This document shows positions 3,097-52,344 of a stretch of 54,113 nucleotides of DNA, piece by piece. The stretch lies in contig JAHRHZ010000085.1 of the NCBI GenBank assembly GCA_024137785.1, positions 2,670,057 to 2,724,169 of the forward strand, in the 5' to 3' direction. The translations under genes and the position numbers were made by a program. The notes under the pieces are model-generated. The model worked only from the letters and a program-made list of their open reading frames with translations, did not search any database and was not told the origin of the DNA. The stretch is from Ginglymostoma cirratum. Taxonomy: Eukaryota. Position 1 is the stretch's first letter. Every line of letters begins with the position of its first letter.

Positions 3097-3403
3097 CTTC
3101 TTTCGGAACAGTGCAGCTGGCATTTACTGGAAATGAGCTCGAAACGTGATATACTTGACACACGTAGGCTGTGTCACTTTCAGGTGTATTTGGCGCGTCC
3201 AAGGAGCTGACCACTTCATGAAGTCCCTCGCCTTTTGCCTGTTGTACATTTCTAAATCCAGTGAAGATGAGTGTACCGTTTCTGTGCCAAGTAAGGTTAA
3301 AAGTCTTCCAGAGAAAAGCCAGAAGTCCTGCACTGCAGCTTGAAAGAAGCAGATGAATCGTCTTCGGAACAGACCGAAATAATTTTTAGGGGAGGTGGTG
3401 AAG
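3097..3403 (-). CDS. Copy A C1-set Ig exon (307 nt, +1 frameshift at 3299-3302)
   Basis: atgcag|CTTCACC...AAAGAAG|gtgaga; ASPPPLKIISV..FKLQCRTSGFSLEDF/NLTWHRNG..VVSSL..YVCQVYH; homologous exon of B is 306 nt. Confidence 0.85.
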
Positions 3404-3537
3404 CTGCATTGTAAAGAATGACATTTAAACAAACGTGGACATAAGACTTCTACTCAAAAACTTAAACGATTTAATGACCGAACCAACTGCTACGTCTGGC
3501 TTCGGCAGCTACATTGATCGTCATTATTTATACCCAT

Positions 3538-3678
3538 TAGGGGCATTTAAACAGTCCTTGGATCAGCAGATGGATGATGATGGGATAGTGTAGGGGGATG
3601 GGCTTAGATGAGTTCACAGGTCGGCGCAACATCGAGGGCTGAAGGCCCTGTTCTGCGCTGTATTGTTCTATGTTCTAT
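3538..3678 (+). mobile_element. CR1-type LINE 3' end
   Basis: Tail ending gaaggccctgttctgcgctgtattgttctatgttctat; related tail at 53400-53548. Confidence 0.7.
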
Positions 3679-4233
3679 ACTGGTCGGGGTTGCTATTACT
3701 TTTATGATGTGGCGACCTCCTAATGCAATTGATATTTCACCTGCATGTTCAGCAAAATTGAACGTTAATTAATGCACATATGATTGAGTCTCATACTGTA
3801 CACTCCTAGCAATCAGCGGTTTGGGAACTGGGTCATAGAAAATGAGACAGCCACATTCCAAACGAGAGGAATAGGAATTTAGCTTTTCAAAGTTGAAAAT
3901 AAAGTGCCATTTAAAGTCCTTAATATTGCCGATGACATCCAGACAATTCATTGTGTTACTCCATGCTAAAATTGTAAAAAGTGCTTCACTTGGAAGTCTT
4001 GCATTAGCTTTCTGTGCAACACAAATTTAAATACCATTTGCTGATACAGCACAATTGCTGAAGTGTGCAGTGTCGCTGGTGATGCTTTCTTTTTTACAAC
4101 TTTATTGAACATGTAATTCCAAAGAAGTGACCCATTCTGTATTCACTACATATATTTATGAAATAGTAGCTGCTACCGCGCTTTCACTGTTCCTTTGAAC
4201 CAAGACCGAACATTTAACTTTGGTCAGACTAAC

Positions 4234-4542
4234 CGTAAACAACAAGTTGCATCGTTTGTTTGTTGACCCTTTGTTGCTGATTTTTGACAGCACAGTAATA
4301 TGTTCCAGTGTCCAGGATGGTCACATTGAAGAGATAAAGGTAGCTTCCAGCTTTCCTTACTTTGAAGAATTTTCTTCCGTCCTCCTCCAGAAGCGCCTCA
4401 CTACTTTCTCTCCACCATTTAACATTTACATTAGAATCATTGACTTCAAAGGGGAACGGGCATGGCAGGATAACTGATGCAGTTATCAGGGTCTTTACTT
4501 GTATAACATTTGGATTAACTTTGTCCAAAGTGCACAGAGCAA
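4234..4542 (-). CDS. Copy A V-set Ig exon
   Basis: aacag|TTGCT...TACG|gttagt; C(PFPF)..W(WRE)..LFNVTILDTGTYYC V-set motif; open frame (ORF 4229-4552). Confidence 0.9.
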
Positions 4543-4851
4543 CTGTTAACAAAATATATATGTATACTGATTAAACAGGGAAGATAAAACTGCATGATGA
4601 AACAATATAATTCAACCAATACGTTCATACAGTAGCAATTTAGTGAGTCTTGATCTTTAAATTCTGCTCCACTATCTGAATTTCTGAACTATCGCAAATT
4701 TTTTTTCACTCATGCAGAAGATTCCTCGGACATGAAAACACTATCGGGAGAAACATACAAAAAATGTGCCCGAATATCCGTCAATTATCAGTTCAATTAT
4801 TCTTCCGTCTTGTTAAACCACATTTCAAACACTGCAAGAAGAAACATGTAC

Positions 4852-4906
4852 CTGGATACGAAACATACAACAAACAGAAGTTCCACAGTGATCCACAAAC
4901 AAACAT
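4852..4906 (-). CDS. Copy A leader (signal peptide) exon
   Basis: 55 nt MFVCGSLWNFCLLYVSYP+G|gtacat; same length and similar sequence as the leader of B. Confidence 0.8.
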
Positions 4907-7427
4907 AGCGACAACAAAAATATGGAAGATCATGCACTGGATATAAAAAGTCAACTGAGGAAGGTTTATTGGACCATCAGTTATGCATCGATTTTAATCA
5001 CCTGGGTCTGTAATGAAAGCAAGAAGCACGTGAGTAATTGCTTGCCGAGCGCACAACATGCGCATGTTTTCAGATAAGATCTTGTTGTGGAAGTCTTGCA
5101 GGGGATTAATATGAAAGAAAAGAAGAAATTCCAACCAACGTCAGATGGCTAATGCTATTCCAAGTTCAAAGGATAACAATTTGAATTTATATCGCATCTT
5201 AAATATCACAGGGCTGAAATCAAGGTAAATATTGCCTCAACCTTAGCATCAGTCCCATACTTCAGTTGCATTTACAAATGTAATTGATGACACGTATGCA
5301 GTATGTTGCCATTTTCCCAAGTTGTTGATATGTTTGAAACCTCATGTCATTAAAAGTCCATTGCAGCAGTGTGGAATGTCATTAGTAGCATAAATAAGGC
5401 AGATAGAGAAAAACCTTTCCCCTTCGTAGAGGCATCAATGTCAAGGTACATCAATTAACGATGAGGAGCACATGATTTAGAGGGGTTTGAGGAATTTCAT
5501 TTCACACAATGAGTTGTGAGTATCTTGAGCGAACTGTCTAAAAGAGCAATAGACGTGGGAAATCTCAAAATATTTCAGAAAAAAATTAGGTGAGTACTTG
5601 AAACCATGTAGCATACAAGGATACAGACCAAGTGCTGGGAAATGTGATTTAAACAAGTCAATGCTCAATGACCAGCACAGACACAATGGCCGAAAAGCAG
5701 CTTTCCTTGCAGTTAAAAAAACATGATTCTGAATCTCACATCAGCATGTTTATTGTTTATTGTTTATTGTTTAGGTTAGGGATTGTGATGTTCACATCTA
5801 CTGGGAGATCAACACATCATGGTTCGTGTTGCCATTCAAGGGCAGTTTCATCAACAAACATCACACTCAAATAAACACTCCGACCTCCACCAGCTGTGGC
5901 TGTGCGATGCAGGTGTCAGATTTTTTGATGCCGTGTGTAATTTATTCAAGAATGTGATTAAAACTGTAACGATGAGAAATGAAAGTAAGCCGGTTGAATA
6001 TTAGCAAAAATGTTGACTTGCGACTTTGTCAATTTTTAATTTTTTGATCATATTTCATTTTACAAAATTAGTAACTTTTATTCTTAAGAATGCTGAACCA
6101 TGAGGGGAAGTATGTATATTTCCAGAATATCAGTCCCAGCAATTCAAACCTTGGCAGGATGTAGTGATGTATCGCAATTTTAGTCAAATTGCAGTGCAGT
6201 TAAAGTGTTAAATCAGGAGAGAATTTCACAATATCTGGGTGCATCACTTGGAAGTTGCAAGATTCAACCGGTACAGAGGAAAACACGAAATAAATTGCAG
6301 AAAGGTTAGATATGGTGAAACGGAATCTTTTGCTAAAGATATGAAGTATAATGATGCAAATGTAAAATTAGTGTCAGGTCATTCAGATCAAAATCAGTCA
6401 CGATGGTGGTGGTCGAGAGTAACAAAGGCGCCAGAGGTAAGCATATTAGGTGGGTGAGGAGCTGTGGGGAAAGGTGAATGAGGAGCAGTGACAGGAGGTA
6501 AATGGATGAGAGGGGATGATGGGTTGGATGGGGTTAGATATCTAGGTCTGTAGTGGGAGTGTTAGATATCTATATGTAGTGCTCAGCTCCTTTGGGCGAG
6601 GAACAGTTTCCTGGCGGGTCCAAGTGAAACAGATCTGGTAAGACGGAGCTGCCTCTCAGGGTGGAATGGGGTCTGTTAAACAGGAGTCAGAGTTTTCATT
6701 ACACAGGAGTTACAGCAAGTTTTATTCTGATAGTTTCTCCCCCCCTCTCGACACACAGAAACAGAGAATGTAGGACCAGGAGTAGGCCATTCGGCTCTTT
6801 GAGCCTGGTCGATTCTGTCCGATCCTGGCTGATCATCCAATTCAGTCCCGTGTTCCTGCTTTCTCCCTGTATCCAATGATCCGTTAAGAACAATATCTAC
6901 AGTTTCCATGTAATTCACAAGAAGTAGGTACATAACAAACAGAGATAATGCTTGAGAATCTCAGCATGTATCGCAGCCCCGGTGGAAGCTCAAAGAAATA
7001 GAGTTAATATTTCCCGTCCAGTATGACTCTTCCTCAGAGATGCTAAGTTAGCCGGAACCCTCTGAAGCACCCAACTATAATTCAGAGTGTGATCTGTTTC
7101 AGTGAGCTCCAGGTACCGGTGGGAAGATGACTTCCCACCGGAAATGTAAACTTCCCAGAACCTTAACACAATGTCAGTCAGTCACAACTTCCAGACATCC
7201 CAGTTGCACCCAGTCTCCGAGTATCCAGGGACAGGAAAAACTGAGCTTCGTACAAATTCCCAATGGTTGTCATTGTGTTGGTGAATGAATAAACACAACT
7301 CGTACTTGTTAATATGACGTTTCTTTCCTGTACATTTTATGACACCACATTTTACCATGCCTCAAACTGGGCATTCACCAAAGATGAACATGGTGTGAGA
7401 AATATTTCTTCGAAACCAGAAAGCCAA

Positions 7428-7730
7428 TTGTTTCTGGGGACCTGGGTTTGAATCCCATGATGGCAGAATGTGGAATTTGAATTCAATAAAAAATCTGGAA
7501 TTAGGAGCCTAATGGTGACCATGAGACCATTGTACAATTATCAGGAAAAGCCCATTTGGTTTACTTATGTCCTTGAGGGAATAAAATGGCCATTTTCACC
7601 TGGTCTGGCTCACATGTGACTCCAGACCCACAGGAATGAGGTTGATTCTTATCTGCCCTCTGGGCAACTAGGGATTGGCAATAAATGCCAGCTTAACCAG
7701 TGATGTGTCATCCCATCAGGGAATAGAAAA
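7428..7730 (+). mobile_element. tRNA-derived SINE (5' truncated)
   Basis: Matches SINE copies at 10451, 34012 and 39140. Confidence 0.8.
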
Positions 7731-10450
7731 ACAAAATTACTTTAAAAACATAACTGTTTAGTTTGGTGATAATACTATTGAGCATCTCATGTCAGATGGC
7801 TAATGCTATTCAAAGTTCAAAGGATAACAATTTGAATTCATATCGCATCTTTAATATCATAGGGATGGAATCAAGGTAAATATTGAATCAAACTTTCCAT
7901 CAGGCCCATACTTCAGTTGCATTTGAAAATTAATTACATATATCCGGTGTCTTTCCATTTTCCCAAGTTGTTAATTTATTTGAAACCTCATCGCTTCAAA
8001 CATCCATTGCAGCAGTATGTCCAGTTATAAGGACCATAGACAGAGCAGATTGGGATAAATATTTTGCCTCAGTACAGGCATCAATAATAAGGGGCACACT
8101 TTTAAGATGAGGAGTAGGTGGTTTTTGTGGTGTTTGAGGAATTTTATTTCACCCAGAGCATTGTGGGTACCTCACACTATCTAAAAGAACAATGGAGATG
8201 GGAAACCTCAAAACATTTCAGGAAAATTTAGTTGAGTATTTGAAACCATGTAGAATATAAGGTGACAGGCCAAGTACTGGGAAATGGAATAAGAATAAAT
8301 CCATGCTCGATGACCAGTACAGACACAATGGCCTACAGGCAGATTTCCTTGCAGTTAAAAACTTCTGTGACTCTCACATCAGCGTGTTTATTGTTTATTG
8401 TTTAGGTTTGTGATTGTTACGGCCACGTCCACTGCGAGATTATCACATCATGGTTCATGTTACCGCTCAAAGACAGTTTCATCAACAAACATCACACTCA
8501 AGTAAACACTCCGACCGGTGGCTCAGCGAAGTCAGGATCAGATTTCTGATACGATGTGTAATTTATTTCATAATGTGATCAAAAATATAACAATGAGAAA
8601 TGAAATTAAGCAGCATGAATATTGGCAAAAATGTTGACTTGTGACTTTGTCAATTTTTAATTTTTTGATCATATTTCATTTTTCAAAATTCGTAACTTTT
8701 ATTCTTAATAATGCTGAACCATAAGGGGAGGTATGTATATTTCCAGAATATCAGTCCCAGCAATTCAAACCTCGGCAGGATGTGGTGATGTATCTCAATT
8801 TTATTAAAAGTGCAAATGTCAAATTAGTGCTAGGTCATTCAGATCGAAATCAGTCATGATGGTCGTGGTATGTGGTGATGTATCTTACTTTCAGTAAAAG
8901 TGCAGTGAGGTTAAGGTGTTAAAGAAGGAGGGCATTTCACAATCTCTTGGTGTATATCTAAGTTCCAAGATTCAACTGTTGCAGATCAAAACACGAAATA
9001 ATTTGCAGATAGGTTACATGTGGTAAAACGGAATCTTTTGCTGAGGATATGAAGTATAAAGGAGCAAATGTAAAATTAGTGTTAGGTCATTCAGATCAAA
9101 ATCAGTAATGATGGTAGTGGTCGAGAGTAACAAATGCATCAAAGCTAAGCATAGTCGGTGAGTAAGTTGTTATGAGGATAGGTTGATGAGGAGCAGTGAC
9201 AGGAGGTATATGGATGAGAGGGGAAGATGGGTTGGATGGGGTCAGCTGTCTAGGCCTGTGGTGGGAGTGTTTGATATCTATATGTAGTGCTGAGTTCTTT
9301 TGGGTGAGTTGAAAAGATCTAGCAAGACGGAGCTGTCTGTCGGTGTGGGATGGGGTCTGATAAACAGGGGTCAGAGTTTTAAATAGACAGGAGTTACAGT
9401 GAGTTTTATTCTGATACTTCCCCCCACCCCCCCACCCCCCCACCTCTTGTGACACACAGAAACAGAGAATGTAGCAGCTGCAGTAGGCAATTTGGCTCTT
9501 TGAGCCCAGTTGATATATACGACTCTGTCTAATCATCCAATTCAATCCACTGTTCCTGCTTTCTGCCCATATACGATGATCCCTTCAGGAATATATCTAC
9601 ATGTTTCTTGAACGTCTTCAATGTTTTAGTCTCAACAGTTTCCATGTAATTAAGAAGTAACAGGTAAGGAACAAACAGAGATAATGCTTGCAAACCTCAA
9701 CAGGTTTGGCAGCACCTGTGCAAACAGGAAGAAATAGAATTAACATTTCCCATCCAGTATGACTCTTCTTCAGAGCTGCTAAGTTGCCCAGAACCCTCTG
9801 AAGCCCCCGACTATAATTCAGAGTGTGATCCATTTCAGTGGGCTCCAGGCACCAAGTGATTCCCCTCTGGAAATAAAAACTTCCCAGGCACTTAACACAA
9901 TGTCAGGAAGTCACGACTTCCAGACATCCCAGTTGCACCCAGTCTCCAAGTATCCAGGGACTGGAAGAACTGAGCTTCATGCAAATTCCCAATGATTGCC
10001 ATTGTATTGGAGAATGAATAAACACAACTCGTGCTTGTTTATATGATTATTTTCCTGCACATTTTATTACAACACATTTTATCACGTCTCAAAACTGGGC
10101 ATTCAACAAAATTGAACGTGGAGCGAGAAATATTTCTTAGATGCCAGAAAGCCAATTGTTTGTTCGAATATTCTTCGCCTAATGAAAATTTCTTCTTTGC
10201 TGAAAACTACTTCATGCATTTCTAATTAATTAACAAATACACCACATGCTGACACACATATCTGCACAACCCAATTAAAGTCACTCCATCAAGTTAAGCT
10301 GCCATGTGTGGTAATTGACAGCAGGTTTGTGCTGCGAAATTGTGCAACTTGGAGCCATCTACATGTCGGTTTATTGTGCAATACGTACCATTTAACTGAG
10401 CTTATACGCAAGTGGAAATATTGTAGAGCTGAACTGAATGCATGAAACAC

Positions 10451-10806
10451 AGGGAGGTGATGGCCTAATGATATTATCACTGGACTGTTAATCCAGATGC
10501 CCAGGTAATGTTCTGGGGACCTGGGATTGAATCCCATGATGGAAGATGGTGGAATTTGAATTCAATAAAAAATCTGGAATTAAGAGTCTAATGATAACCA
10601 TGAGACAATTGTACAATTGTCAAGAAAAACCCATCTCATTCACTTCGGTCCTTCAGGGAATAAAATGGCCATCTTTACCAGGACTGGCCTACCTGTGACT
10701 CCAGATCGACAGGAATAAAGTTGACTGCTGCCTACCCTCTGGGCAAGGAGGGATGGGCAATGAGTGTTGGCTGAGTCCGTGATGTCTTCATCCGATCAAT
10801 GAATAC
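10451..10806 (+). mobile_element. tRNA-derived SINE (SacSINE/DeuSINE-like) with LINE-derived tail
   Basis: A-box-like tggcctaatg and B-box-like ggattgaatccc; tail gggatgggcaat.. shared with LINE at 42727; family name is recalled, not searched. Confidence 0.75.
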
Positions 10807-11723
10807 AAAAACAAAATTCCTTCAAAAACATAATTGCTTCATTTAGTAATACTATTATTGAGCATCTAAGCTTTGGAATGTTTTAGATTTCAATTACTTA
10901 CATATTTTGTAAATGAACTGCAGAGTTGCTGGGTCTCTTTGAATTCCAGGGCTCATGTTAAATGATCCGAACACCATTGCAGCAGATCACATTTGTGCAG
11001 CCAATCCTTTCACATTTATTGATCAATGGAAAACAATAAGGCGCATATATGACAGGACAAGGAGACACCAACTTTTTAACAGCAGGGTCAAGTTATGATT
11101 CAAATCTCATGGTTTAATGTTCAAAATAAATTTCAACAGCTTCTAGAAAAGTCCAGTATCGCTGCAACACAGCAACACCTGGAAGACCACACATCACAAA
11201 CATAATGCTGAAAACAGGTCAATTCAGTCCTCATGATCTCCAGGAACAGAGGATTTCTTAAATAATAAAACACAGCTCACAGATATCGACTCTCAGCTGG
11301 AAAATTTAAATTTGAGTTATCTCCAAGACAATCTTGGTTCTGACTTAATTAAGTACTGGGCTTGTTCTGCTGAATATTGTTAAATGGAATTCATGGTTGT
11401 TGTTTTTTACCTGATTTGTACATAGCTGGTCATCTCACTGATTGCTCACAGTTAGTTGCCCTTCAGAAACCGGTGGTGAGCCTTCTTCAGGAACTGGTGC
11501 AGTCAATGCAGTTCAGATCTATCCAATGTGCTGTGAAGAAGGGGATAGGTAATTTGGATCCAGGAGCAACTCAGATGATTACAGTTCTAAGGTGGGTGAT
11601 CCATATCATGACTGATGACTGCCTATCTTCTATCCAGGTGGTACAATTGCATAGTATTATGGAGCATTTCCAATTACCATTACCGAGATGAATGCAGTTG
11701 CAACGGAACTCTAGAAAGTGGCA

Positions 11724-14155
11724 AGATGTGGAGCTGGATGAACAGAGCAGGCCAAGCAGCATCATAGGAGCAGGAAAGCTTGACGTTTCGGGCCGAGACC
11801 CTTCATCAGAAATGGGGGAGGGGCAGAGAGTTCTGAAAAAAATAGGGAGAGAGGGGGAGGCGGATAGAAGATGGATAGAGGAGAGGATAGGTGGAGAGGA
11901 GACAGACAATTCAAAGAGGCGTGGATGGAGCCAGTAAAGGTGAGTGTAGGTGGGGAGACAGGGAGGAGATAGGTCAGTCCAGGGAGGACGGACAAGTCAA
12001 GGGGGCGGGCTGAGGTTAGTAGATTGGAGATGGGGGCACGGCTTGAGGTGGGAGGAGGGGACAGGGGAAAGGAAGAACAGATTAGGGAGGAGGGAACGAA
12101 CTGGGCTGGTTTTGGGAAGCGGTTGGGGGAGGGGAGATTTTGAAGCTTGTGAAATCCTGGTCGACCTATTGTCTCCGCCAGCTCCTGCCCCACCGAACTT
12201 ATCTCCCACCTACGTCGAGTCCATTTTCATCCCCTTGGTCCAGGAACTCCATACCTACATCCGTGACACCACCCACGCCATGAACCTCCTCCACAACTTC
12301 CAATTCCCCGGTCCCCAACACCTCATTTTTACTATGGATGTCCAGTCCCTATGCACCTGTATTCCTCATGCAGATGGCCTAAAGGCCCTGTGCTTCTTCC
12401 TGTCCGGCATACCTGACCAATCCCCCTCCACTGACACCATCATCCGCTTCACTGAACTCGTCCTCACCCTCAACAACTTCTCTATCAATTCCTACCACTT
12501 CCTACAAACAAAGGGGGTGCCCCTGGGTACCCGCATGGGCCCAAGCTATGCCTGCCACTTTGTAGTTTATGTCGAAAAATCCCTCTTCCGTACCTACACT
12601 GGCTCTAGACTCCACCTCTTCCTCCTTTACATTGATGGCTGCATCAACACCACCTCATGCTCTCACGAGGAGCTCGAACAGTTCATCCACTTCGCCAACA
12701 CCTTGCACCCCAACCTTAAGCTCACCTGGACCATCTCTAACACCCCTCTCCTCTTCCTGGACATCTCTGTCTCCATCTCGGGTAACCATCTCGGGTAACC
12801 ATCTTGAAACCGATATCCATTTCAAGCCCACCAACTCCCAATGCTACCTAGAATACACTTCCTCGGACCCACCTTCCTGCAAAAATGCCATCCCCTATTC
12901 CTAATTCCTTCGCCTCAGGTGCATCTGCTCCCAGGATGAGGCATTCCACTCTTGTCCAGCTGAGATGTCCTCGTTCTTCAAGGACTGCAACATCCCCCCC
13001 ACCACCCACCCCCCCGCAGTGGTCGAGAACGCGCTCGACCGTGTCTCCTGTAACTCCTCCTTCACACCCCATCCCCGAAATAACAACCGAAAAAGAATCC
13101 CCCTCGTCCTCACGTACCACCCCACCAACCTCTGGATCCAACGCATCATCCTCCGACACTTCCGCCATCTGCAATCTGACCCCACCTCCAAAGACATTTT
13201 TCCCTCTCCACCCTTGTCTGCTTTCCGGAGGGACCACTGTCTCCGTGCCTCCCTTGTCCGCTCCATACTCCCCTCCAGCGCCATCACACCCGGCACTTTT
13301 CCCTGCAACTGCAGGAGGTGCTACACCTGCCCCCACACCTCCTCCCTCACCCCAATCCCAGGCCCCAAGAAGACTTTCCACATCAAGCAGATGTTCATCT
13401 GCACATCTGCAAATATGGTACACTGCATCTGCTGTACCCGTTGTGGCCTCCTCTACATCGGGGAAACCGCTTGGGTACTGCTTTTCAGAACACATGCACT
13501 CGGTTCGCAACAGACAATTGCACCTCCCAGTCACAAACAATTTTAACTCCCCCTCCCATTCCTCAGACGACATGTCCATCCTGGGCCTCCTGCAGTGCCA
13601 CAATGATGCCACCCGAAGTCTGCAGGAACAGCAACTCATATTAAGCCCGGGAAACCTGCAGCCCAATGGTATCAATGTGGATTTCACAAGCTTCAAAATT
13701 TCACCTCCCCCAACTGCATCCCAATGCCAGCCCAGCTCGTCCCCGCCTCCCTAACCTGTTCTTCCTCTCACCTATCACTTCCTCCCACCTCAAGCCGCAC
13801 CCCCATCTCCAATCTACTAACATCATCCCGCCCCCTTAACCTGTCCGTTCGCCCTGGGCTGACCTATCTCCTCCCGACCTCCACACCTACACTCACCTTT
13901 ACTGGCTCCATGCCCGCGTCTTTGACTTGTCTGTATCGTCTCCACCTTTCCTCTCCTCTATCCATCTTCTATCCGCCTTTCCCTCTCTCCCTATTTATTT
14001 CAGAACCCTCTTCCCCTCCCCCATTTCTGACCAAGTGTCTCGGCCCGAAACGTCAAGCTTTTCTGCTCCTGTGATGCTGCTTGGCCTGCTGTGTTCATCC
14101 AGTGCCACACCTTGTTACCTCGGATTCTCCAGCATCTGCAGTTCCTATTATCTCT
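11724..14155 (+). mobile_element. Penelope-like retroelement: inverted 5' terminal repeat (11724-12156) plus degraded RT and GIY-YIG
   Basis: 'TMDVQSL', 'QTKGVPLGTRMGPSYA', 'LYIDG' RT motifs; 'VHCICC..LYIGET'; flanked by ctctagaaagtggca / ctctagagagtggca; absent from paralog at ~40385. Confidence 0.93.
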
Positions 14156-14703
14156 AGAGAGTGGCATTGTCCAGAACAAAGCAGCACAGTTAATCTGAAA
14201 ACATATTGTTTTAAATTATCATTTTACCTCACACGTCACAACAGCACTTCAGAAGGAAACAAACTGATCTAGACAGTCATTAACAGGCGTTTGTAAAGAC
14301 AGCGGATTAATATGAAAAGCACATATGAGCAGTAAACCAGCGATATGTTTAAACTGAAAACCTTCATTTCATACTACGCTTCCTTGTGAACATCTATATT
14401 AGAAAAGGATCACAACAAATAGAAGCAATCACCGTTTCTCAGCCTTTACATGTTTCTAGATCCTTTCAAGCCATGGAGTTGATGGATTCACAAGACCGAA
14501 AATACTCAATGCGATTTCCTTATGATGAGAGCATTTCTCGACAGAACTATGGTGGAACATTGGAAAGAAGGTCGCTGAAGCGCCAGAACAATGAGATAAA
14601 TGAATCATTCAATAACCAGTTTGTTTGTCACGTCGATTGATGAAACAATGTCACAAATTACAAGAATTCGAAGTATACTTAAACACAATAACGTAACGAA
14701 CCC

Positions 14704-17461: not shown

Positions 17462-17508
17462 GACGGGGAACGAAAATATCAATAAATCCAACTCAGCAAG
17501 AAGATGTG
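17462..17508 (+). CDS. Copy M cytoplasmic exon 1
   Basis: ttctcag|GA..GATGTG|gtgagg; GRGTKISINPTQQEDV; phase 1-0. Confidence 0.75.
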
Positions 17509-41850: not shown

Positions 41851-41905
41851 ATGTCTATGCGTCTTTCACTATGGGATGTCTGTCTGCTGTGCATCTTGTG
41901 TGCAG
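41851..41905 (+). CDS. Copy B leader exon
   Basis: MSMRLSLWDVCLLCILCA+G|gtacac; 55 nt, phase 1. Confidence 0.85.
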
Positions 41906-44900
41906 GTACACATTTCTGGTGCTGTGCATTCACCGATCATAAGCAAGACATAACGTGAACTTACAGCTAGATATCTTAAATAAATTGATATTTTTAATTC
42001 TTGTATTTTTTTCAAGTCAGTTATTCCCAGATCTCATTTGTCACTTGGTCCATCAGGAAAAAAAACGTAACATTCTATTAGGACAATAGTTTAAAAATGT
42101 GAGAATTAGTCAAAGAGTAAAATGCGGTAAATTACTGTTGCGGCAACAGCCTGGAATAATGATGTTATTTGGGTGGTGCAGACTGTCCTTCTTGTTTAAT
42201 CTCAGTGTGTTTCCTTGGTTGACAGTTGCTGCCAATTCAGCCAAAGTGAATCCGGACCTTACACGAAAAACGGTGCAGAGAGGTTCATCATTTCTTATGC
42301 AATGTCCTTTCTCCTACAAAATCGACTATTCAAATATTGTTGCCCACTGGTGGAGAGAAGATAATAAAACCTTTCTGCGGGAGGATAGCAAAAAGATTTT
42401 CCATGTAAATAGAGGAGAAGCTTCCCTTAACCTCCTGAATGTGACTGTCCGGGACGCTGGAACATATCACTGTGCAGCCACGTATCAGAAACAAAAGGTT
42501 GGGAAAGCTGCTGTGCAACTTAATGTATATGGTAAGTGTCACCGCAGATAAACGTGGAGTCTTAGCCGCTTAAAAACAATCAGCAGCAGTAAACAAATTA
42601 ATTTATTAGATACAGACATATCGTGTAACATATTTGCACTTATTTAAAATGAAATGTGTTCAAGAATGTGGAGACCTTGGAGAACCAGTACCAATCTCAA
42701 AGTTTGAGATTTACTCTGTATTAAAAATGAATCACTTTGGGACGTGGGCATCCATGGCTGGCCAGCATTTATTGCCTGTTCCTAATTGCCCTTGCCAAGG
42801 TAGTGGTGAGCTGCCTTCTTGAACCGCTGCAGTCCATGTGCTGTAAGTAAACTCACAATGCCATTTTGGAGGGAAATTACAGGATTTTGACCCAGTGACA
42901 ATGAAGGAACAGTGATATATTTCCAAGTCAGGATGGTGAGTGGCTTGGGAGAAACTTGCAGATGGTGGTGTTCCCATATGCTTGCTACCCTTGCCCTTGC
43001 AGATAATAGATTGTGGATTTGGCAGGTGTTGTGTCAGAGTGTTTAATGAATTTCTGCAGTGCATCTTAAAGTTACACATTGCTGTTACTGAGTGTGTGTC
43101 GTGGAGTGACTGAATGTGGTGCCAATCGAGTGGGCAGCTTTTTACTGGATGGTGTCAAACTTCTTGAGATCTTTTGGACCTGCAGGCATGCAGGCAAATG
43201 GGGAGCATTCCAACACACTCCTGACTTGTGCCTTGTAGAGGGTAGACAGGCTTTGGGGAGTCAGCAGTTGAGTTACTCGCTGCAGTATTGCCAGCCTCTG
43301 ACATACAGTTCTATTTATATGGCTCGCCCAGTCCTGTTTCTGCTCAATGGTAACCCCCAAAATGTAGATAATGGGGAAATCACTGACGGTGATGCCACTG
43401 AATGCTAAGGGGTGGATGGTGAATTGGAGAATGTGTTTGCTTGGCATTTGTGTGGTCTGCATGTTCCTGTCAACTTTTCAGCCTAAACCCAGATGTTGTC
43501 CAGTTCTTGCTGCACTTGGTCATGAGTTGCTTCAGTTTTATGCATTGAGGTTTTGGAGGGAAATTGATTGCAATATTTTAAATTTTTGTCTGTATTTGAT
43601 TATGGACTGACAGGATGAGCATCCTTGAAAATATCTGCAATATTATGCATTTTGAAATGTTCCTTACCTCACGAAATGAGCCAAATTCTCAGTGCCATCA
43701 CTTGGACGGTTTTTGTTCAATTCGTCAGATCCAGGTCCAATTTCTCATACTGTTTGGAATAGAAAAGTGCAGTATGATGATTCAATCATGTTTCTATTAT
43801 TAAGTCGTCACAAATTCTGGAAACTCTTTTTTTCTAAATATGCAGGAGGTATATTGAAAGGATTTGAGGTTTTTTGAAATGATAAATGTAATATCAATTT
43901 CATGTACTGTTCGTAGCAACAATTAATGCAACTGTCATGCTGGAAATAAGTTGCTTTGGTCACCAAAACGTACATTTTTGCATAAAATGCAAAATCAATT
44001 TATCGAAATTGTGTTATTTACCATTCATCTCCACCAGCTCATCTGAAAATTGTCTCCGTTCCATCCAAAGACCTTTTTTCTGCTTTTCTCAGCCTCCACT
44101 GCAGGACATCTGACGTTTACCCAAATGACTTTAAACTTACTGGTTACAAAAATGGTGAAAACATTTTGACAGGATTCGGGAATGAACAGCAGGTAAAACC
44201 TGAGGATCTTTACGAAGTCGTCAGCACCTTGGAGTTGCAAGAGGCAGTTGAGAGCGGGACAGTTTATGCCTGTCAAGTATATCACGATTCAAGCTCATTT
44301 CCAGCAAATGCCAGCTACACTGTGAACAATAAAGGTAACATTTCATCATATGTGGTACATTGAATGCTGCGATATCATTCAACATGGGTAAATAAGCATA
44401 CAGTGGTGATGTCAGTTATTTGAGTATGAGTCAGTCAAAGTCAAAATTTGATTGGATTGGATGGATTAAGGTTTTCTTTCTTTCTGTAGTTTGACACTGA
44501 TATATAATTATCACAAGTGACTTTATCAAAAACTAGATGTGAATCTTCAGCATAAGTCAAAAAATTACTTTCATGCATAGACTGATGACTCAAAAAGAGC
44601 GACAAGGTCAATGTTAATTCTTGGGAAAGCGTGAACAGTATCGAATTTGGTCAGGCCACATTTGGAGTACTGCATGCAGTTCTGGTCACTCTTTTATACA
44701 ATGAATATTATTAAACTGGAAAGAGTGCAGATAAAATTTCCTAGGATGCTACATGGATTGGAAGATTTGAGATACAAGGAGAGGCTGGATAGGCTGGGAC
44801 TTTTACCCCGGAGCGTCGGAAAGGGTGACCATATAAAAGTCTGTAAAATCATGAGTGGCAGCGTTAAGCAGATAACCAACAGCTTTTCCCCATGGTAGGG

Positions 44901-46321
44901 GAATCTAAGGCTAGAGGGCACAGGTTGAAGGTAAGAGGGGAGAGATCCAAAAGAGCCCAGCGGAGCAATTTTTCACACACATGGTGGTGCGTGTCTGGAA
45001 CAGTCTGCCAGAAGTAGTGTTGGAGACGAGTACAATTTTGTCATTTAAGAAACATTTGAACAGGTACATGGATGGGATGGATGTGGAGGGGTATGGACCA
45101 AATGTAGGCAAATGGGACTAGTTCAATTGTCAAAACTGGGAAGCGTGGACAAATTGGGCTGAAGATGTGTTTCAGTGCTGTCAACCTGTATGACTATGAT
45201 ATAGCTGCACACATGCAGTAGATCTCGTTTCTTTCCCCCATTCATCAGAATGCCACAGATTTGATAAAATACAAACGATAGAGTCAAAGCTGTTTGGGTT
45301 GCAGCTGCAGAGAGATTACAATTATTTCAAACAAAGTTTGTCTCCATGGAAAACTCAAGAAAACCTGAAAGCAGGTTCCATTATACACTTTTTCTGACTC
45401 TAATCTGTACGCAATCCAACTAAACTACCACCAGACAATTTAATGTTTTGCCACATAGCTTGGAGAACTGAAAACTTATTGCAATTAGCACTGTTTCCAT
45501 GAATTTTACATGTGTCATTAGTTGAGTTGCTTTTCCCATTTACCTATTTCTCTGAGTTCCAGACATTTTGTTTCTGGCTGCATATGGATCAGTTGAACAA
45601 AGAGTTAGCAAAAATTGAAATGCTGAGACTTTATGCACTCTATTTATCATTTGTGCAAGTCAGTACAATTGAGACTGATGTACATGTATCTTCAATTTCT
45701 GGTGCAGTTCCTAATTTTGATTTTATATTACCATTACAGATTTTGCCTCTAAAATCAGTGTTACTATGGCTGCCAGTTTTGCTGCTCGTGCACTTGCAAT
45801 TCTCATATTGACCGTGATGATTGCCAAAGGTTTTCTGCCATTTATCTCCAAAGGTATGAACAGGACTGAAAAGTCTCACTGAAATTAATTTAATTGGGAG
45901 CCGAATATGTGAACTGTACAATTTAAACAACTTTTTTTGTGAAACCATGTCCAAATATGTACCTTGCTTCAGGTCTTACTTCATGACAAATATAAGATAA
46001 GAAGATTCGAAGTTTCACTTTGCTAAGTTATGTTGGTGTAGATCAAAATTGTGATGGCAAAATTCATTGCTGAAAGGTGTTTCTCGAGCTTCAACCCTCA
46101 AAACATAAATTCAAAGCATCTCTGTGTTACGTTTCAAGATGTGTTGTGAAACTATTATTCCTATTCTACCCTGTTTATAAATGTTGAGTAGTAGTCAATT
46201 TACTTTTGGTTTCTTTGGTTTGCTGGTGAGTACAAGTATCAGCCTTTATGGTTATGACTTATGTCATTTTTATTTCTCAGGTCAGGGAAAGAAAATGTTC
46301 CATAGTTCCAACTCAGCATGA
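41851..46321 (+). CDS. SIRP-like V-C1 Ig-superfamily receptor, copy B (putative activating form, 270 aa; may be a pseudogene)
   Basis: Join 41851-41905, 42226-42531, 44038-44334, 45740-45853, 46281-46321 = 813 nt open frame ending TGA; requires a cryptic C1 acceptor. Confidence 0.65.
42226..42531 (+). CDS. Copy B V-set Ig exon
   Basis: gacag|TTGCT..TATG|gtaagt; QCPF..HWWRE..ASLNLLNVTVRDAGTYHC. Confidence 0.92.
42727..43540 (-). mobile_element. CR1/L2-group LINE 3' fragment
   Basis: 'ILGVTIEQKQDWASHI..LSTLYKAQVRSVLECS'; 3' tail shared with the SINEs. Confidence 0.85.
44029..44334 (+). CDS. Copy B C1-set Ig exon
   Basis: Open frame HLKIVSV..LHCRTSDVYPNDFKLTGYKNG..YACQVYH..NK G|gtaaca; ancestral acceptor reads CAT, in-frame CAG ends at 44037. 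Confidence 0.85.
44648..45200 (+). mobile_element. CR1-type LINE 3' fragment
   Basis: 'VRPHLEYCMQFWS..LERVQ..YKERLDRLGL'. Confidence 0.9.
45740..45853 (+). CDS. Copy B transmembrane exon (contains Arg)
   Basis: DFASKISVTMAASFAARALAILILTVMIAKGFLPFISK; CGT at 45787-45789. Confidence 0.85.
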
Positions 46322-46328
46322 GGATGTG
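46281..46328 (+). CDS. Copy B cytoplasmic exon 1 (+1 nt; stop at 46319-46321)
   Basis: GQGKKMFHSSNSA*; 48 nt vs 47 nt in M. Confidence 0.7.
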
Positions 46329-47329
46329 GTGAAGCAAATTTCTTTTATTCTGTCTATTTTCATTTTCATGTATATTTGAACAATTTAAACTGGGAACCCA
46401 AATATATATTTCGAACGTGTCAAGACAAGTCTTGAAGATTTCATCAGCTCTCAAAAGCACAACTTCAGCTGAATAAAAATAAAATAAAGAAAATAAAAAT
46501 TGGTCTGAAGTTACGCTAAGTGTTGCAACTATTTTACATTGTGAAATATGTTTATTGCTGTGTAAGCTGTATTGGTTAACTTATGCTGAAATTTTCAACG
46601 ATCAATCATAGGTTTGATGCTGACAAATAGCTTTGACTTTCATTTTCTTTTGTGCTTAACAAGTGACAATGTGCTGAATAATTTTGCAGCGTTGATGACA
46701 GACATGACATTACATTGGGATGATGACTATTCTGAATGATATGTTTATGGTTTCAAATAGAGATGATTCTTCCCTCCTTCCTTTTTGTGCTGTTCAAAAT
46801 TAATTCATTAGTCTGAGTTTGGTGATTATTCCTGAGTTCTGCTCGGGACTCTGCCAAAGCATTCAATATGTTATGCAGACAGTTTGCACAAGTTGGCTTC
46901 CTTAGGAAGCTTTCATTGTCGGCTGCCTCTCGACTACTGCAACGTGCTGCAGTACCATACGATCTCGAAAAAGAAACAGGCGAGGTGTTGGATGCAGATT
47001 ATTTTCTTTTCAATTCTCAAAACGTGCTTATCAGTGACATGGGAAAGGAAGCTCCCAGTCTGTGGCTTCTGAAAAAGAGTAGGTGGGACTTACTCAGAAA
47101 TAACTGAGAATGGTTTGGTCAAACTTGAAGTCTTTGTTGCCACCTTCAGAAGGCACAATGCAAAGACTCACATTAATTCTTGACTGCAATTGAATGCAGT
47201 ACAGACCAGCGGTTTAACCCCTTTGAATGCATTTTTAAGCAATTAGATTTTTAAAATGAATCCTACTGCCTTATTATCTCAGTTGCAGTCATGGATCTGA
47301 ATTTACTTTCTTTTAGAAAAAAAAATTCG

Positions 47330-48262
47330 ACGTAGAACTGTACAGCACAGGAATGGACCTTTGGCAGATGATTTGTGCTGAACTATTCCCTTCTGCCTGC
47401 CCTTGGCTCGCATCTCTCCATTCCTTGCACATTAATGTGCTTACCTAAAAGTTCCTTAAATGCCCCTAATGGAATCTGCCTCCACTATCACCCTTAGTAG
47501 TGCATTCTTGACTCCTACCGCTCTTTGTGTAAAAACATACCCCTCACATCCCCTTCAGCCCAACAAGTCCACACCAACCCTGTGAGCATCCCACACAGAC
47601 CCATCCCCCTGCAACCCACCTCATCAACATGTCCCTGAACACGATTGGCAATTTAGCATGGCCAATCCACCTAGCCTGCATATCTTTGGACTGTGGGAGG
47701 AAACTGGAGCACCCGAAGGGAAACTCACGCAGACACGAGGAGAATGTGCAAACTCCACGCAGACAGTCACCTGAGGGTGGAATTGAACCCAGGTTCCTGG
47801 CACAGTGAGGCAGTAATGCTAACTACTGAGCCACCGTGTCACCCAACATTTGAGCCTCAATGTTTGATCTCTGAAAATGCAGCAGCTCACATTTACCCAG
47901 ATTAAACTCCATCTGCCATTTCTACATCCATATCTGCAACTGATCTATTTCCTGCTGAATCCTTTGACATCTTCTACACTATCCTCAACTCCACTGATCT
48001 TTCTATCGACTGCCAAATTACTAACCCAGCCAGCTACATTTTCACCCAAATCATTTATATATATATGTATCACAAACAGAAGAAGTCTAAGTATGGATCC
48101 CTGTAGAAGACCACTAAGCCACGGACCTCCAGCCTGAAAAACACCCTTCAACCACTACCCTCTGTCTTCGACTGGCAAACGGATTCTGAATCAACTTGAT
48201 CAAGTCACCGTGGATCTCATGCATTTTAATTTTCTGGATGACCCTACCATAAGGGATCTTGT
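47330..48262 (-). mobile_element. CR1-type LINE fragments
   Basis: 'QGSIL..LLFVIHIYINDLGENVAGWVSNLAVDRKISG' RT motif and 3' tail; absent from M. Confidence 0.8.
47555..47845 (-). mobile_element. HE1-like V-SINE
   Basis: Minus strand ggtggctcagtagttagc..gggttcaattcc..gtggagtttgcacattctcc..gtttcctcccacagtccaaaga (tRNA head plus V domain). Confidence 0.85.
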
Positions 48263-48993
48263 TGATACTGCAAAATAAAAACCCAACTCTTTCATTGCAT
48301 CTGGTACCTGCAATTCCCTGACAACACTGCAGCTAAATTACCTGGACTGCAGTAAGTCAGGAAGCTGGCTTCCTACTGGATGCTTAATAGTAACTAGTCA
48401 TTGGCACCAAATACTGGCCTTGCCAGCAAGTCTTGTATCCCGTTAAAAATAGCTTGTTGTGCAGAATTGTCCCACTTCTGCACTGCAGATGCAGCAAAAA
48501 TAAAATTCCTTTCTCAGCAATCTTCAGAAAATGAAGTCTTTATTCATTATTGTATGTCTTTCTATGAAATGTTCCAGCTGCACTGCTGTAGGTAACAGAA
48601 TGAAGTCCCCTGATGTCCAGATGCAAAAATTAGCAGTGCATCAGATCAAGAGAAAACACAATTATCTACGATTGAGAAATACCTCACAGGAGGCCAAAGA
48701 ATACACTTTCGAGCACTGAAATAGTGTGGTTTACATTTTAGACAAAAGCGCACCATACTTGTTGAATTTTTTTCATTGTCACCAATCTGAACATGTTCCT
48801 CCTCAAATAGCTGGCACATTTTCTAACTTAAAACATAAATAATTTACTTTAAAGCACCCTGTCTGAAGTCAAGTGTACGTTGCGAATTCTTTGAAAATGC
48901 ACTGCACCTTTGCCTTCGCTTCAGACTCAAATACGTTTATTTATTAATGTTTGGATGGCCTATTGAAATAATTGCCTTCCTTTATTTACAAAG

Positions 48994-49890
48994 GAACAGC
49001 AGGGTGATTCTAAAGTTAAGTGTCTATTAGCAGTGGTAAGTACAGTTATTCCATTCTCTCAAACTGACTTACTGATTTAACAAATTTAACGTGAGGGAAT
49101 TTTCAATCAAAACTGCACCATGTACCCTCAGAATGAAAGACATGACTAATTTATTTCAGATAACTGCCACTTATAATTTTACTTTGAAGCCAAGTGACGT
49201 TATTATTTTATTGCTTTTAATAAACACAGAAAAATTTATTGTTGCTTCATTTAATAAACTGTATTGCACAATGAATTTGTAGCAGAATGTAACAAAACAG
49301 AAAGTCAACTATCAGATTTCAAAAACGTCACACATTTCATTCATCATACATTGAACTGAGGAAAGCAAACTTTTCTTCAGAACACTGCATAATTGCAGGT
49401 AAAAAAATCAGATTTTTTTCTGATGAAGGGTTTAGGCCCGAAACGTCAAGTTTTCCTGCTCCTATGGTGCTGCTTGACCTGCTGTGTTCATCCAGCCCCA
49501 TGCTTGTTATCTTGGATTCTCCAGCATCTGCAGTACCTTTTATCTCTGCTCTTAATCTAGTTAGTTCTGAGGAAGGCATAATTCCGAAACAACAGGAAGA
49601 AGTCATAGTATATACAGAGGTACATTTCAGGTCATGTATGACAATAATCAGTTCATTCATGATCATGAGTTGATTTGGAGATGATATTGAAAATTCCTTT
49701 GTGTAATTTTCATCTAGAATGATTTAAATGAATGGTAATTCAGTCTCAATGCTGTTTTTCAGACAAAACACTGCATGACAGACAGCAAGCTGACTTACCT
49801 TGCTGTGAAATTCAATGATTCCAGTACATCATCGAAACACAAGCACCAACAGAAAGTCCAGTGTATGCAGCGGTGAAAAGCAGGTACTAA
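48994..49890 (+). pseudogene. Copy B relic cytoplasmic ITIM exons (48994-49035, ~49548-49619, 49763-49890)
   Basis: Homologous to the M tail exons; downstream of the stop, TE-disrupted and frameshifted. Confidence 0.8.
49418..49547 (+). mobile_element. Penelope terminal fragment replacing the 5' part of the ITIM exon
   Basis: ctgatgaagggtttaggcccgaaacgtc..tatctct joins directly to GCTCTTAAT (AL-N of LTYAALN). Confidence 0.9.
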
Positions 49891-52344
49891 ATTGGGCAAA
49901 CAAAAATAATCTTTCCAGATTCAAGCACAGATTGTATCACAGAAATGTTTATGTTTCTTTTTAATTTTAAGCGATTACTTTCCTTATTTAAACCTGTTGT
50001 AATTTTGCAAAACTGTGGATGAATTTCTTCAATTCCAGTAATGTCACCTGGATCCACTTCTTTTAAGTTGTAAAATTCACGCAACAGTTGCAACTAAAAA
50101 TTACAATTCAATTATTTCTAACTGTCAGAGAACCCCTTATTCCTTTTCGATTTGCATGAAGTTCGATATATTAATCATTAAGATTATTCCTAAGTATTTT
50201 TCTCTTGTGGTTGTATACTGTCGGATATTCATCATAATTCTGCCTGTACTGGTAACACATGACAATGTTGATAATTTCATTCCCTTTCTCCAGTCCCTTT
50301 GACCTAGACATGATGAACTTTATTTTGACAAATTTCATAAGGTTTCTGTTGGTTGAGTCTATGTTGTTTATGTTTCACTGTCTTTTCCAGCATGAATTGA
50401 AATTTATTCTGGTTTTGTTGCGGCAGTAATTTTAATCCTATTTGTCCTCTTGCTGTGAGAATGTTCACGTTGATTTTTTCCATCTCCAGAAAGCTGAAGA
50501 GATCCATTTGCCAAACTGCCCTTTGTTTTGATGGCTCATTTTGCTTAGTTAATTTGCTTAAGTTAATAATCGGCTGTTTCTTCTTCAAATTTTAATGTTC
50601 ATGTATATTCAATGTAGAGTGCCACTCCACTCAAACAGTGCAGACTGATGCTCTATCCTTGATCCCCCATTGTTTCGCATGGCACTCTCATTGCATATGA
50701 TATAATAGGGAAAGATGGCATCACTCATCAATGTTTCTGAATGCAAAAACATAAAGCTATACTTTATTGAATTCAGAATAGAATTAGAGAAAAAAATCAA
50801 TTTGCATTTGAAGAAAGCATGTTAATATATACCTAAGCAATTCTCTTAATACATTTGTATACTGTTTTCTCAAAAATGGCACGCAACTAACTTTTTTGAT
50901 TCTCTCAATCCCATTTAATTGTAAATTAATTCAGTCGTAAGCTTTTTTGTGAAACCTGTAGTGCCTTTAATAAAAGCAATATTTTTGGCTCACTTTTCTC
51001 TCACCAGTGTTTCCTTGTGAAGTTTGTACTGCAACTGCAGATAGGGAACAAATCAATTTTGTAATGTTTTTGGTTCATTTCTGGCTCATTAAATTTCCTG
51101 ACAAACAATGTGTTGCTCTGACTTATTATCATTTAAGCAAAATTGTCTTGTCCCCAAATCACTCCCTTTTCTAATTGTTCAGTAAAACATAGTTGTGTTA
51201 TTGCCACAGAAGGGAAATGATCTGCTGTTAATTCAACACTAAGGAATTTCAATCTGAGTTCTGAAAATGCATTCCTAAGAATTGTATTGGGGGAGTCTAT
51301 CACTCTCACTGAAAAGTGTGATTGTTGAATTGTGACTGACGATTGGTAATATTTTTGAGATGGAATTTAATTCTGGCTACAATTTAAACTTGCGCCAGAG
51401 CCATTCAGCACAGAAAGCCAAATACATTAAACACACATCGGAGATGTTCCTAAAGCTGGGAGTGAGTCACAAGTGGGGAATAAACGAAAATCATTTTAGA
51501 ACACACATGTTTATACTTTTAAACTTGCCGTGCGGGCACACATATATTGGATCACTTCAGGAAGTGATGAAATGCATGGGTCTCAGTTCCAGGTATGCTT
51601 TTAATGAAAATTAAAATTGCACCATACAGAACGTTATCGTAAACATGAGCTCCCTTCGTCATTTCATCATAGTTAGGAGTTGGCACTAATATACTGGATG
51701 ACGTGCCCACGATCAGATTAGTCTATAAACCACTTCGTATGTTGCAGTGTTTGATCCAAAGTGGAAAATAAAATGCTTCTTAGTCATCACCCACAAAACA
51801 AAATTTGGCTTGGAAATTTAATGATTGACTACTATGGATTTTATGCAATTTTGCTTCTTTATAGTGGATGATCATTGTCCCAAATGGTGACATGTTGCAA
51901 ACATTTTTTTGTTGTCAACAGGATTTGCAACATCCTGTGTATAACGAAGATGACAGTGACATATTTTGGGCCTTTCCTCTTGTCAGAAGCAGCAGGAAGT
52001 CTTTAATTCTAAAATGGCTAACCTTTTAAAAGCCTCGATGTTATCACAGACCAACGACGGTTGTAAGTCATTGAGAACTTATGCAATGTGTTTTCGATTG
52101 TCTCAGGATAAAGTATTATACCTTCATGGACATCTGGAGCAACATTTAGTCCGTAAAAGAAATGAAAGGCCATTGTGGCTTACGGTATGAATTGACTCAT
52201 GAGCGTATTAGAAACAAGTCCAAGTTTGGTAACTTCCGCAGAATTTGGAAGGTTATGAACTTTAACAATGAAAGTAATTCTGCTTCTGTTGAGGAAATTG
52301 CCAACGTTGAATCTACAGGCAATTTTCAGGGTAGAAAAATGATA

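Follow-up and report, generated by a model that had tools for sequence, protein, structure and literature searches.

C1-set domains are, to our knowledge, rare outside immunoglobulins (Ig), T-cell receptors (TCR), MHC molecules, and tapasin. It is because of this rarity that SIRPs have been put forward as kin of the precursor of antigen receptors (PMC2785349). A SIRP is a type I membrane protein in which an N-terminal V-set domain is followed by true C1-set domains, two in number. The SIRP-alpha tail holds four tyrosines in two repeated modules, spaced 24/17/24, and the partner form combines a short tail with a basic residue inside its membrane span; the genes lie in tandem clusters, and the paired ectodomains are nearly identical. 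Within the accessible literature, mammals, birds, and lizards are the only groups from which SIRPs have been described, and a 2022 review called SIRP origins unknown (PMC9652883).

Elasmobranchs possess nonrearranging genes of a related build, UrIg and UrIg2, with the V domain in one exon, a split leader, and C1-set constant domains; UrIg is secreted and has 3 C domains, and UrIg2 has 9 to 11 (PMC12227049). It has been postulated that antigen receptors began with a two-domain membrane receptor, the "VJ + C1" precursor (Fig. 2 of PMC12227049). In C1-set domains, exactly 13 residues separate the strand-B Cys from the strand-C Trp, the BC loop reads (F/Y)(F/Y/H)P, and xVxH comes after the strand-F Cys (PMC2785349). 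Here, we analyzed a locus of the shark Ginglymostoma cirratum and the gene family to which it belongs.

Results

The window is the whole stretch of 54,113 nucleotides that was analyzed. The initial annotation had described it as probable shark DNA carrying three paralogs with leader, V, C1, and transmembrane (TM) exons. Three paralogous copies were indeed found, A on the minus strand and B and C on the plus strand, and their V-set and C1-set exons are real: zebra-shark RefSeq proteins match the window exons in tblastn with E values down to 1e-46, far beyond chance. The best matches come from orectolobiform sharks (75 to 87% amino-acid identity), as expected of shark DNA. Leader and TM exons have AG/GT boundaries and are of phase 1 throughout. 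However, the full set of leader, V, C1, and TM is present only in copy C, since copy A is without TM and tail exons and copy B without leader and V. The Pfam cutoffs were 26 bits for V-set and a gathering score of 21 for C1-set (PF07654). Exons were searched singly and joined only in scripts checking for an open frame, and exon joining within the copies is a prediction from homology only. Transposon insertions are dense across the whole locus, and the window holds no flanking nonrepeat genes.

Copy C is an activating-type gene with an intact open reading frame. Its five exons, all with canonical splice sites, yield an open model of 270 codons, the sole unbroken frame in the window. The leader exon (41851 to 41905, phase 1) is 85% identical to residues 6 to 18 of Stegostoma P0160 in tblastn; given this match, an in-frame ATG-ATG directly upstream of the V exon (42165) was dropped as a candidate leader. 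The V-set exon (42226 to 42531; 40.4 bits) is 76% identical to Stegostoma P0156 and retains every family-conserved position but one, R75K. The TM exon (45740 to 45853; 87% identical to P0160) carries an Arg in its hydrophobic core, at the same place as the TM Arg of P0160. The cytoplasmic exon (46281 to 46328) is 1 nucleotide longer than that of copy B, so that the frame stops at a TGA (46319 to 46321) after a tail of 13 residues, and the whale-shark model P0072 stops in the same frame and at the same place. Downstream of the stop lie relics of tail exons 1 and 2 (49545 to 49884), in which a repeat (49417 to 49548) has taken the place of the 5′ end of exon 1 and exon 2 has a 1-nucleotide deletion ahead of the last Tyr motif; their dN/dS against copy B is 0.9 to 3.8.

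The C1-set exon of copy C (44038 to 44334) is open, scores 39.1 bits, and is 77% identical to P0160 in tblastn. Whereas P0160 shows all C1-set hallmarks (C-13-W, FYP, and CQVYH), copy C retains the spacing from Cys to the Trp position and CQVYH, with VYP at the BC loop and Gly in place of the Trp. Four conserved positions are changed, P126H, F151V, W160G (the invariant Trp), and T202A, and the exon is 3 codons shorter at its 5′ end. Given the missing invariant Trp and Phe, copy C may be dead as well.

RNA data were also inspected for this copy. Across 41200 to 47199, a pair of raw RNA runs and two contig sets covered none of the leader, V, C1, or TM exons and spanned no exon joint; reads fell only on repeats at 42.6 to 43.4 kb and 44.6 to 45.2 kb. 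This null is no proof of silence; only 24% of the poly-A run behind it was read, and its tissue is unspecified. No reads of run X12 were placed, and those of run X2 follow the genome collinearly through the introns, so that this run looks like DNA. Among the annotated proteins of the protein collection, none is identical to copy C.

Copy B was an inhibitory-type gene of which only the dead 3′ half is left. Relative to copy C, it has lost ~2.8 kb comprising the leader, V, and the first ~100 nucleotides (first third) of C1, so that the positions equivalent to 41347 and 44139 are joined at a junction at 15269 to 15272. This was evident from a three-way alignment and from self-BLAST blocks (14842 to 15269 with 40921 to 41347, and 15272 to 18449 with 44139 to 47284). 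The C1 remnant, strands C to G (15272 to 15467, donor AAAG|gtacca), scores 34.5 bits over profile positions 32 to 85 only and is 80% identical to P0156 in tblastn. ORF 15191 to 15481 is thus a chimera of noncoding and C1 sequence and was ruled out as an intact or hybrid C1 exon, because its 5′ part has no C1 similarity and the alignment shows a plain deletion junction; by the same alignment, the reading of 41263 to 41347, upstream of copy C, as a piece of C1 was rejected.

The remainder of copy B is open from the TM exon to the stop. It comprises a TM exon (16931 to 17044, phase 1/1; 79% identical to P0156 in tblastn) whose hydrophobic core is free of charged residues, a small cytoplasmic exon (17462 to 17508, phase 1 in and phase 0 out) matching residues 351 to 365 of P0156, and two tail exons that resemble each other. 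Tail exon 1 (19700 to 19810) holds tyrosines 1 and 2 (LTYAAL and TMYTE) and is 76% identical to residues 367 to 403 of P0156 in tblastn, and its donor, GAG|gtatat, agrees with an exon junction of the RefSeq model. Tail exon 2 (19954 to 20082) holds tyrosines 3 and 4 (LTYLAL and PVYAAV) and ends with a TAA stop. The four-Tyr tail previously noticed in this DNA is therefore real, but in the window it is intact only in this 5′-truncated copy.

Copy A is a second lineage of the family and is frameshifted. Its leader exon (4852 to 4906, phase 1) starts with an ATG at 4906 to 4904, comprises 18 codons plus 1 nucleotide before the donor G|gtacat, and matches the P0160 leader in tblastn. The frame is open across leader and V. 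The V-set exon (4234 to 4542, phase 1 at both ends; 28.2 bits) is 54% identical to Stegostoma P0157 in tblastn, with which it clusters in the tree (98/95 support). The C1-set exon (3097 to 3403, 307 nucleotides) has a +1 frameshift within a T-run (3299 to 3302), followed immediately by a stop, which is why it scores 16.8 bits, below the cutoff of 21; the two halves of the exon match P0157 in different frames, at 71% and 79% identity (tblastn). The BC loop reads FSL, and the Cys-Trp spacing is retained if the frameshift is disregarded. Over V and C1 together, 11 of ~51 family-conserved positions are altered. No TM or tail exons were found below 3097 within the window by tblastn and a hydrophobicity scan; they may lie outside the start of the window or inside an N gap.

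Copies B and C belong to a segmental duplication (9117 to 20776 versus 37822 to 50586). Their dN/dS is 0.55 overall and 0.3 to 0.5 in C1 and TM. Terminal branches are long for V and C1 of copy A and for C1 of copy C and short (0.10) for V of copy C. We consider it probable that the window carries a portion of a tandem cluster of SIRP-like V-C1 paired receptors that evolves by birth and death, the copies here being mostly relics.

Homologues were found in sharks and rays. Full-length proteins with leader, V, C1, TM, and four-tyrosine tail are present in Stegostoma and Heterodontus; Heptranchias, Scyliorhinus, Chiloscyllium, Pristis, Hemitrygon, and Mobula have V-C1-TM models whose tails are short or differ; the models of Rhincodon and Hemiscyllium are incomplete or fused. 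The four-tyrosine modules recur in P0156, P0157, and P0155. Copies A and C, like all full-length homologues, have a single C1 exon between V and TM (34 to 46 bits in the homologues), and the predicted ectodomain (pLDDT ~90) resembles V-C1 chains. Inhibitory/activating pairs occur in several species: Heterodontus P0007, with a long ITIM tail, and P0008, short-tailed and with a TM Arg, share 87% identity and are encoded on one chromosome, and Stegostoma P0156 and P0160, likewise on one chromosome, have identical V domains. Near-identical ectodomains with opposite signaling modules, encoded by linked genes, are what defines paired immunoreceptors. Together with the decaying copies, these pairs bear out the proposal of a multigene V-C1 family with inhibitory and activating partners under birth and death. 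The suggestion that such a family might be undescribed applies only to the searchable literature, in which we found no publication on it; its predicted proteins are already public under SIRP-like names.

The resemblance to SIRPs, also suggested initially, was borne out by several lines of evidence. RefSeq names relatives "SIRP alpha-like" and "SIRP beta-1-like." Among 5.8 billion proteins searched, the only nonelasmobranch matches were rodent and turtle SIRP-alpha (E values of 1.5e-11 and 6.5e-13), and the top ESM Atlas clusters are SIRP-alpha (0.96). BLASTP against SIRP-alpha gave one collinear alignment over V-C1 and a separate one over C1, TM, and tail. The elasmobranch proteins share with SIRPs the type I membrane topology, the V-set domain ahead of a true C1-set domain, the tandem gene clusters with near-identical paired ectodomains, the partner form with a basic membrane residue and short tail, and the order of tail motifs, four tyrosines in two repeated modules (spacing of 23/14/23 in the window). 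They differ in that the basic TM residue is an Arg and in that there is one C1 domain, not two, and hence not the three Ig domains that mark a SIRP. When the tail exons alone were compared with the SIRP-alpha tail, BLASTP found no similarity, and the likeness is at the motif level only. SIRPs are probably the closest named family, although the ectodomain resembles them no more than it does UrIg2 or Ig chains.

Discussion

We propose, with a probability of roughly three in four, that elasmobranchs at large possess a family of two-domain type I membrane receptors, with V and one C1-set domain, which come in inhibitory/activating pairs like mammalian SIRP-alpha/SIRP-beta. Judging from the motifs, the V domain of the inhibitory members, intact in other species, would bind a ligand, and phosphorylation of the four tail tyrosines (LxYxxL, xVYAxx, LxYxxL, and xVYAxV) would recruit SH2 phosphatases; the activating partners, which pair a near-identical ectodomain with a short tail and an intramembrane Arg, may signal via an ITAM adaptor.

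The family could instead be an independent nonrearranging VJ-C1 lineage of antigen-receptor-like genes in which the four-tyrosine tail and the Arg-TM partners arose convergently and whose closer kin would be UrIg/UrIg2, PRARP, or Ig light chains, not SIRPs. In a family profile search of the PDB, UrIg2 was the best nonrepeat match (79 bits, E value of 3e-21), slightly above SIRP-alpha (72 bits, 5e-19) and with Ig chains close behind, so that a specific kinship with SIRPs is not proven. Antibody light chains, which have a V plus C1 ectodomain as do TCR chains, lead the single-sequence and fold searches, and distant family members retain a J-like GxGTxL motif; the single C1 domain and the dissimilar tail sequence point the same way. 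We nevertheless regard this reading as unlikely in view of the exclusive SIRP-alpha matches outside elasmobranchs, the leading ESM Atlas clusters, and the agreement in order and spacing of the tail motifs. The C domains of UrIg and UrIg2 number 3 or 9, and PMC12227049 mentions no ITIM motifs for them and, as far as consulted, describes no activating/inhibitory pairs. The elasmobranch family shares their nonrearranging, elasmobranch character, split leader, single-exon V, and C1-set constant domain, but it has a single C1, where their VJ exon is followed by at least three C1-type domains, and it has a TM and a signaling tail. In contrast to Ig light and TCR chains, the window genes lack recombination signal sequences and separate J segments; their V exon continues through the G strand, and they have their own TM and tyrosine-motif tail. 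That they encode B7-type ligands (V-C proteins like B7H6/NCR3LG1) is very improbable. Two members carry the RefSeq name "natural cytotoxicity triggering receptor 3 ligand 1-like," and B7-H6, CD276, and PD-L1 are among the PDB and fold matches, yet B7-H6 scores below SIRP-alpha and UrIg2, the C domain shows the strict C1-set hallmarks absent from CD80 domain 2 (PMC2785349), and ITIM-type tails with Arg-TM partners are receptor features. The CD28 family was ruled out as a home because its members all have a single V domain (PMC11599192).

A further question concerns the window itself, in which all three copies could be pseudogenes, a graveyard beside functional clusters elsewhere on the chromosome, with the open frame of copy C merely recent. 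The substitutions and shortening of its C1 exon, the long C1 branch, the dense transposon insertions, and the lack of RNA reads and of an identical annotated protein speak for this. Against it stand the open five-exon frame with canonical splice sites, a V domain with all conserved positions but one, a short-tail frame and stop common to the whale-shark model, and dN/dS values of 0.3 to 0.5, not 1, in C1 and TM. We hold it to be a serious possibility, at somewhat less than even odds. The window itself mainly shows gene death and the conversion of an inhibitory into an activating gene, and the intact RefSeq models from other species are better experimental material than its copies.

It is conceivable, though we consider it doubtful, that the elasmobranch family is a surviving two-domain VJ-C1 membrane precursor of antigen receptors and the root of SIRPs; in that case, SIRPs would have begun as V-C1 paired receptors in the earliest jawed vertebrates, with the second C1 a later gain. 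With SIRP-like V-C1 pairs in both sharks and rays, the origin of this receptor type would move back to the base of the jawed vertebrates. The family would also provide concrete genes for asking whether inhibitory "self" checkpoints predate bony vertebrates and how such checkpoints relate to UrIg and to rearranging receptors.

Duplicated V-C1 pieces lie in repeat-rich DNA

The window DNA is vertebrate-type and rich in repeats, with a single N gap (100 N at 642-741) whose flanks (426-640 and 742-956, 215 bases each) are 100% identical, suggestive of an assembly artefact. A six-frame scan and tblastn yielded two V-like and three C1-like coding pieces. Against the Pfam V-set profile (cut-off, 26 bits), the V pieces at 42090-42548 and 4232-4570 scored 40.4 and 28.2 bits, respectively. 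Against the C1-set profile (cut-off, 21 bits), the C pieces at 44025-44345 and 15191-15481 scored 39.1 and 34.5 bits, and the one at 3086-3385 remained under the cut-off with 16.8 bits. Self-BLAST revealed a segmental duplication, 9117-20776 versus 37822-50586, at 74-86% identity and broken by transposon insertions; 41347-44139 is present in the second duplicate only.

Several repeats surround the three paralogous V-C1 receptor gene copies, hereafter A, B, and C. A unit of ~2.7 kb lies in tandem between copies A and B and recurs upstream of copies B and C (5095-7787, 7789-10867, 34001-35730, and 37821-39543). Retroelement copies with a GIY-YIG-like motif in their ORFs, which we take from this motif to be Penelope-like, occupy 1-640, 11720-14150, and 20900-24000; one of them interrupts the sequence upstream of copy B, and two of the ORFs gave no Pfam match. 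The degraded sequence at 24500-27900 resembles a provirus or LTR retroelement; it contains a CCHC-like motif, and its match to Integrase_H2C2 is weak (20.3 bits, under the cut-off). Within a GC-rich region, 197 bp are doubled at 100% identity (30848-31044 and 32809-33005).

Copy C is possibly a live gene beside two relics

Gene models were built from three zebra-shark proteins placed on the window by tblastn and from splice-site reading. Copy A, on the minus strand, consists of a leader (4906-4852), a V exon (4542-4234), and a C1 exon of 307 nt (3403-3097), with phase 1 at every exon boundary. A fourth T in 3299-3302 shifts the C1 frame into a stop, and no transmembrane (TM)/tail exon was found downstream in the window by tblastn and a hydrophobicity scan. 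In copy B, sequence homologous to 41347 is fused directly to sequence homologous to 44139 at a clean junction (15269/15272); the leader, the V exon, and the first third of C1 have therefore been deleted. What is left is a C1 remnant (15272-15467), a TM exon (16931-17044), a small cytoplasmic exon (17462-17508), and two tail exons (19700-19810 and 19954-20082), in a frame open from the TM exon through to the stop. Copy C has a leader (41851-41905), V (42226-42531), C1 (44038-44334), TM (45740-45853), and cytoplasmic exon (46281-46328), which together form a 270-codon open frame with an arginine in the TM segment. Its cytoplasmic exon exceeds that of copy B by 1 nt, and the protein therefore stops 13 residues past the TM exon, an end whose frame and place are common to one whale-shark model. 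The old tail exons lie as relics 3' of this stop, the start of the first being replaced by a repeat and the second carrying a 1-nt deletion.

The initial annotation had proposed three paralogs with leader, V, C1, and TM exons and a four-tyrosine tail. All four exons were found in copy C, whereas copy A has no TM exon in the window and copy B lacks the leader and V; the tail motifs reside in the two tail exons of copy B, those of copy C being relics.

Decay was assessed at 52 columns conserved in at least 85% of 16 family members. Copy A carries 11 changes at these columns, the frameshift not counted, and copy B three, including the invariant L182. In the copy C V domain, R75K is the sole change. 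The C1 domain of copy C no longer has the invariant Trp (W160G) or Phe (F151V) and shows P126H and T202A as well; its exon begins at a new acceptor, 9 nt into the original exon. Between copies B and C, dN/dS was 0.34-0.49 for C1 and TM; for the tail exons beyond the copy C stop, it was ~1 or higher. In trees, copy A grouped with zebra-shark LOC125459911 and copies B and C with a zebra-shark SIRP-like pair; terminal branches were long for copy A V, copy A C1, and copy C C1 and short for copy C V.

In one poly-A RNA run (24% read), copy C exons had no reads and no exon joints, and only repeats were covered; support for its splicing thus comes from canonical sites, phase, and the match to RefSeq models of other species. 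Repeats in the copy C introns (42800-43000, 43200-43400, and 44600-45200) were covered very deeply by the RNA run and by contig sets. Most of these reads continue into unlike sequence and represent transcribed repeat families, not the copy C gene. The window holds two relics beside copy C, which is possibly a live activating-type gene.

The V-C1 family is widespread in elasmobranchs

Window exons were used as queries one at a time, never as a spliced protein, and searches for relatives recovered V-C1 models in many sharks and rays. In an exhaustive HMMER search, the copy C V exon matched single domains at 43-53% identity in proteins of ~260-410 residues, as well as a 212-residue whale-shark model with 73% identity to the first half of the domain; the matches were RefSeq models of horn shark, bamboo shark, whale shark, and catshark. 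Further searches added zebra, epaulette, sevengill, basking, and white sharks, sawfish, stingray, and devil ray. In NCBI annotation, these proteins are called 'tyrosine-protein phosphatase non-receptor type substrate 1-like' (SIRP-alpha-like), 'signal-regulatory protein beta-1-like', 'NCR3 ligand 1-like', or 'uncharacterized'. Complete relatives possess a leader, V, C1, TM, and then a four-tyrosine tail.

Inhibitory/activating pairs exist in this family. The horn-shark proteins P0007 and P0008 are 87% identical, but P0008 has Arg in place of the TM Gly of P0007 and a short instead of a long tail. The V domains of zebra-shark P0156 (inhibitory type) and P0160 (Arg-TM type) are identical, which suggests that the paired receptors were duplicated very recently or have undergone gene conversion. 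The proposed multigene, birth-and-death family of V-C1 paired receptors is supported.

Two RefSeq models deserve comment. Because parts of the ~2.7 kb repeat (5774-5986, 8405-8604, and 35118-35326) match P0156 residues 38-108, with stops in the window copies, the N-terminus of this model probably derives from a repeat or represents an alternative 5' exon; its first 22 residues match 32351-32286 on the minus strand. The 546-residue epaulette-shark (Hemiscyllium ocellatum) model P0158, named 'cell adhesion molecule-related/down-regulated by oncogenes-like', fuses two adjoining V-C1-TM receptor genes of different subfamilies.

Resemblance to SIRP has limits

With 13 residues separating Cys and Trp, FYP, and xVxH, the C domain of the shark family is genuinely of the C1-set type as defined by Hatherley et al. 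(PMC2785349). The sole matches beyond elasmobranchs were rodent and turtle SIRP-alpha (E values of 1.5e-11 and 6.5e-13), and BLASTP aligned SIRP-alpha collinearly with the shark proteins over V-C1, with a second alignment over C1, TM, and tail. SIRP-alpha also formed the nearest ESM Atlas clusters (0.96, protein language-model features). The shark tail reads LTYAAL, TMYTE, LTYLAL, and PVYAAV at spacings of 23, 14, and 23 residues, versus ITYADL, TEYASI, LTYADL, and SEYASV at 24, 17, and 24 in SIRP-alpha. However, a specific kinship with SIRP is argued against by four results: the shark family, unlike SIRP, has one C1 domain only; its tail exons alone gave no BLASTP similarity to SIRP-alpha; shark UrIg2 scored slightly higher against the family profile (79 bits) than SIRP-alpha (72 bits), Ig chains and B7-H6 scoring not much lower; and antibody light chains headed a fold search with a confident predicted model of the ectodomain.

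Among other candidates, the shark VJ genes UrIg and UrIg2, which do not rearrange, have 3 or 9-11 C domains (PMC12227049), an architecture unlike that of the window genes. The CD28 family was rejected because each of its members has only one V domain (PMC11599192). PRARP and shark NCR3 are further candidates. In a 2022 review, SIRPs are recorded for mammals, chicken, and Anolis, and their origin is called unknown (PMC9652883).

Thus, the initial observation was partly confirmed and its interpretation partly supported: the window shows a genuine cluster of SIRP-like V-C1 paired receptors under birth-and-death evolution, in a shark near the Orectolobiformes. The family had been thought possibly undescribed; our full-text search found no paper on this elasmobranch family, but its members are already public as predicted proteins under SIRP-like names.
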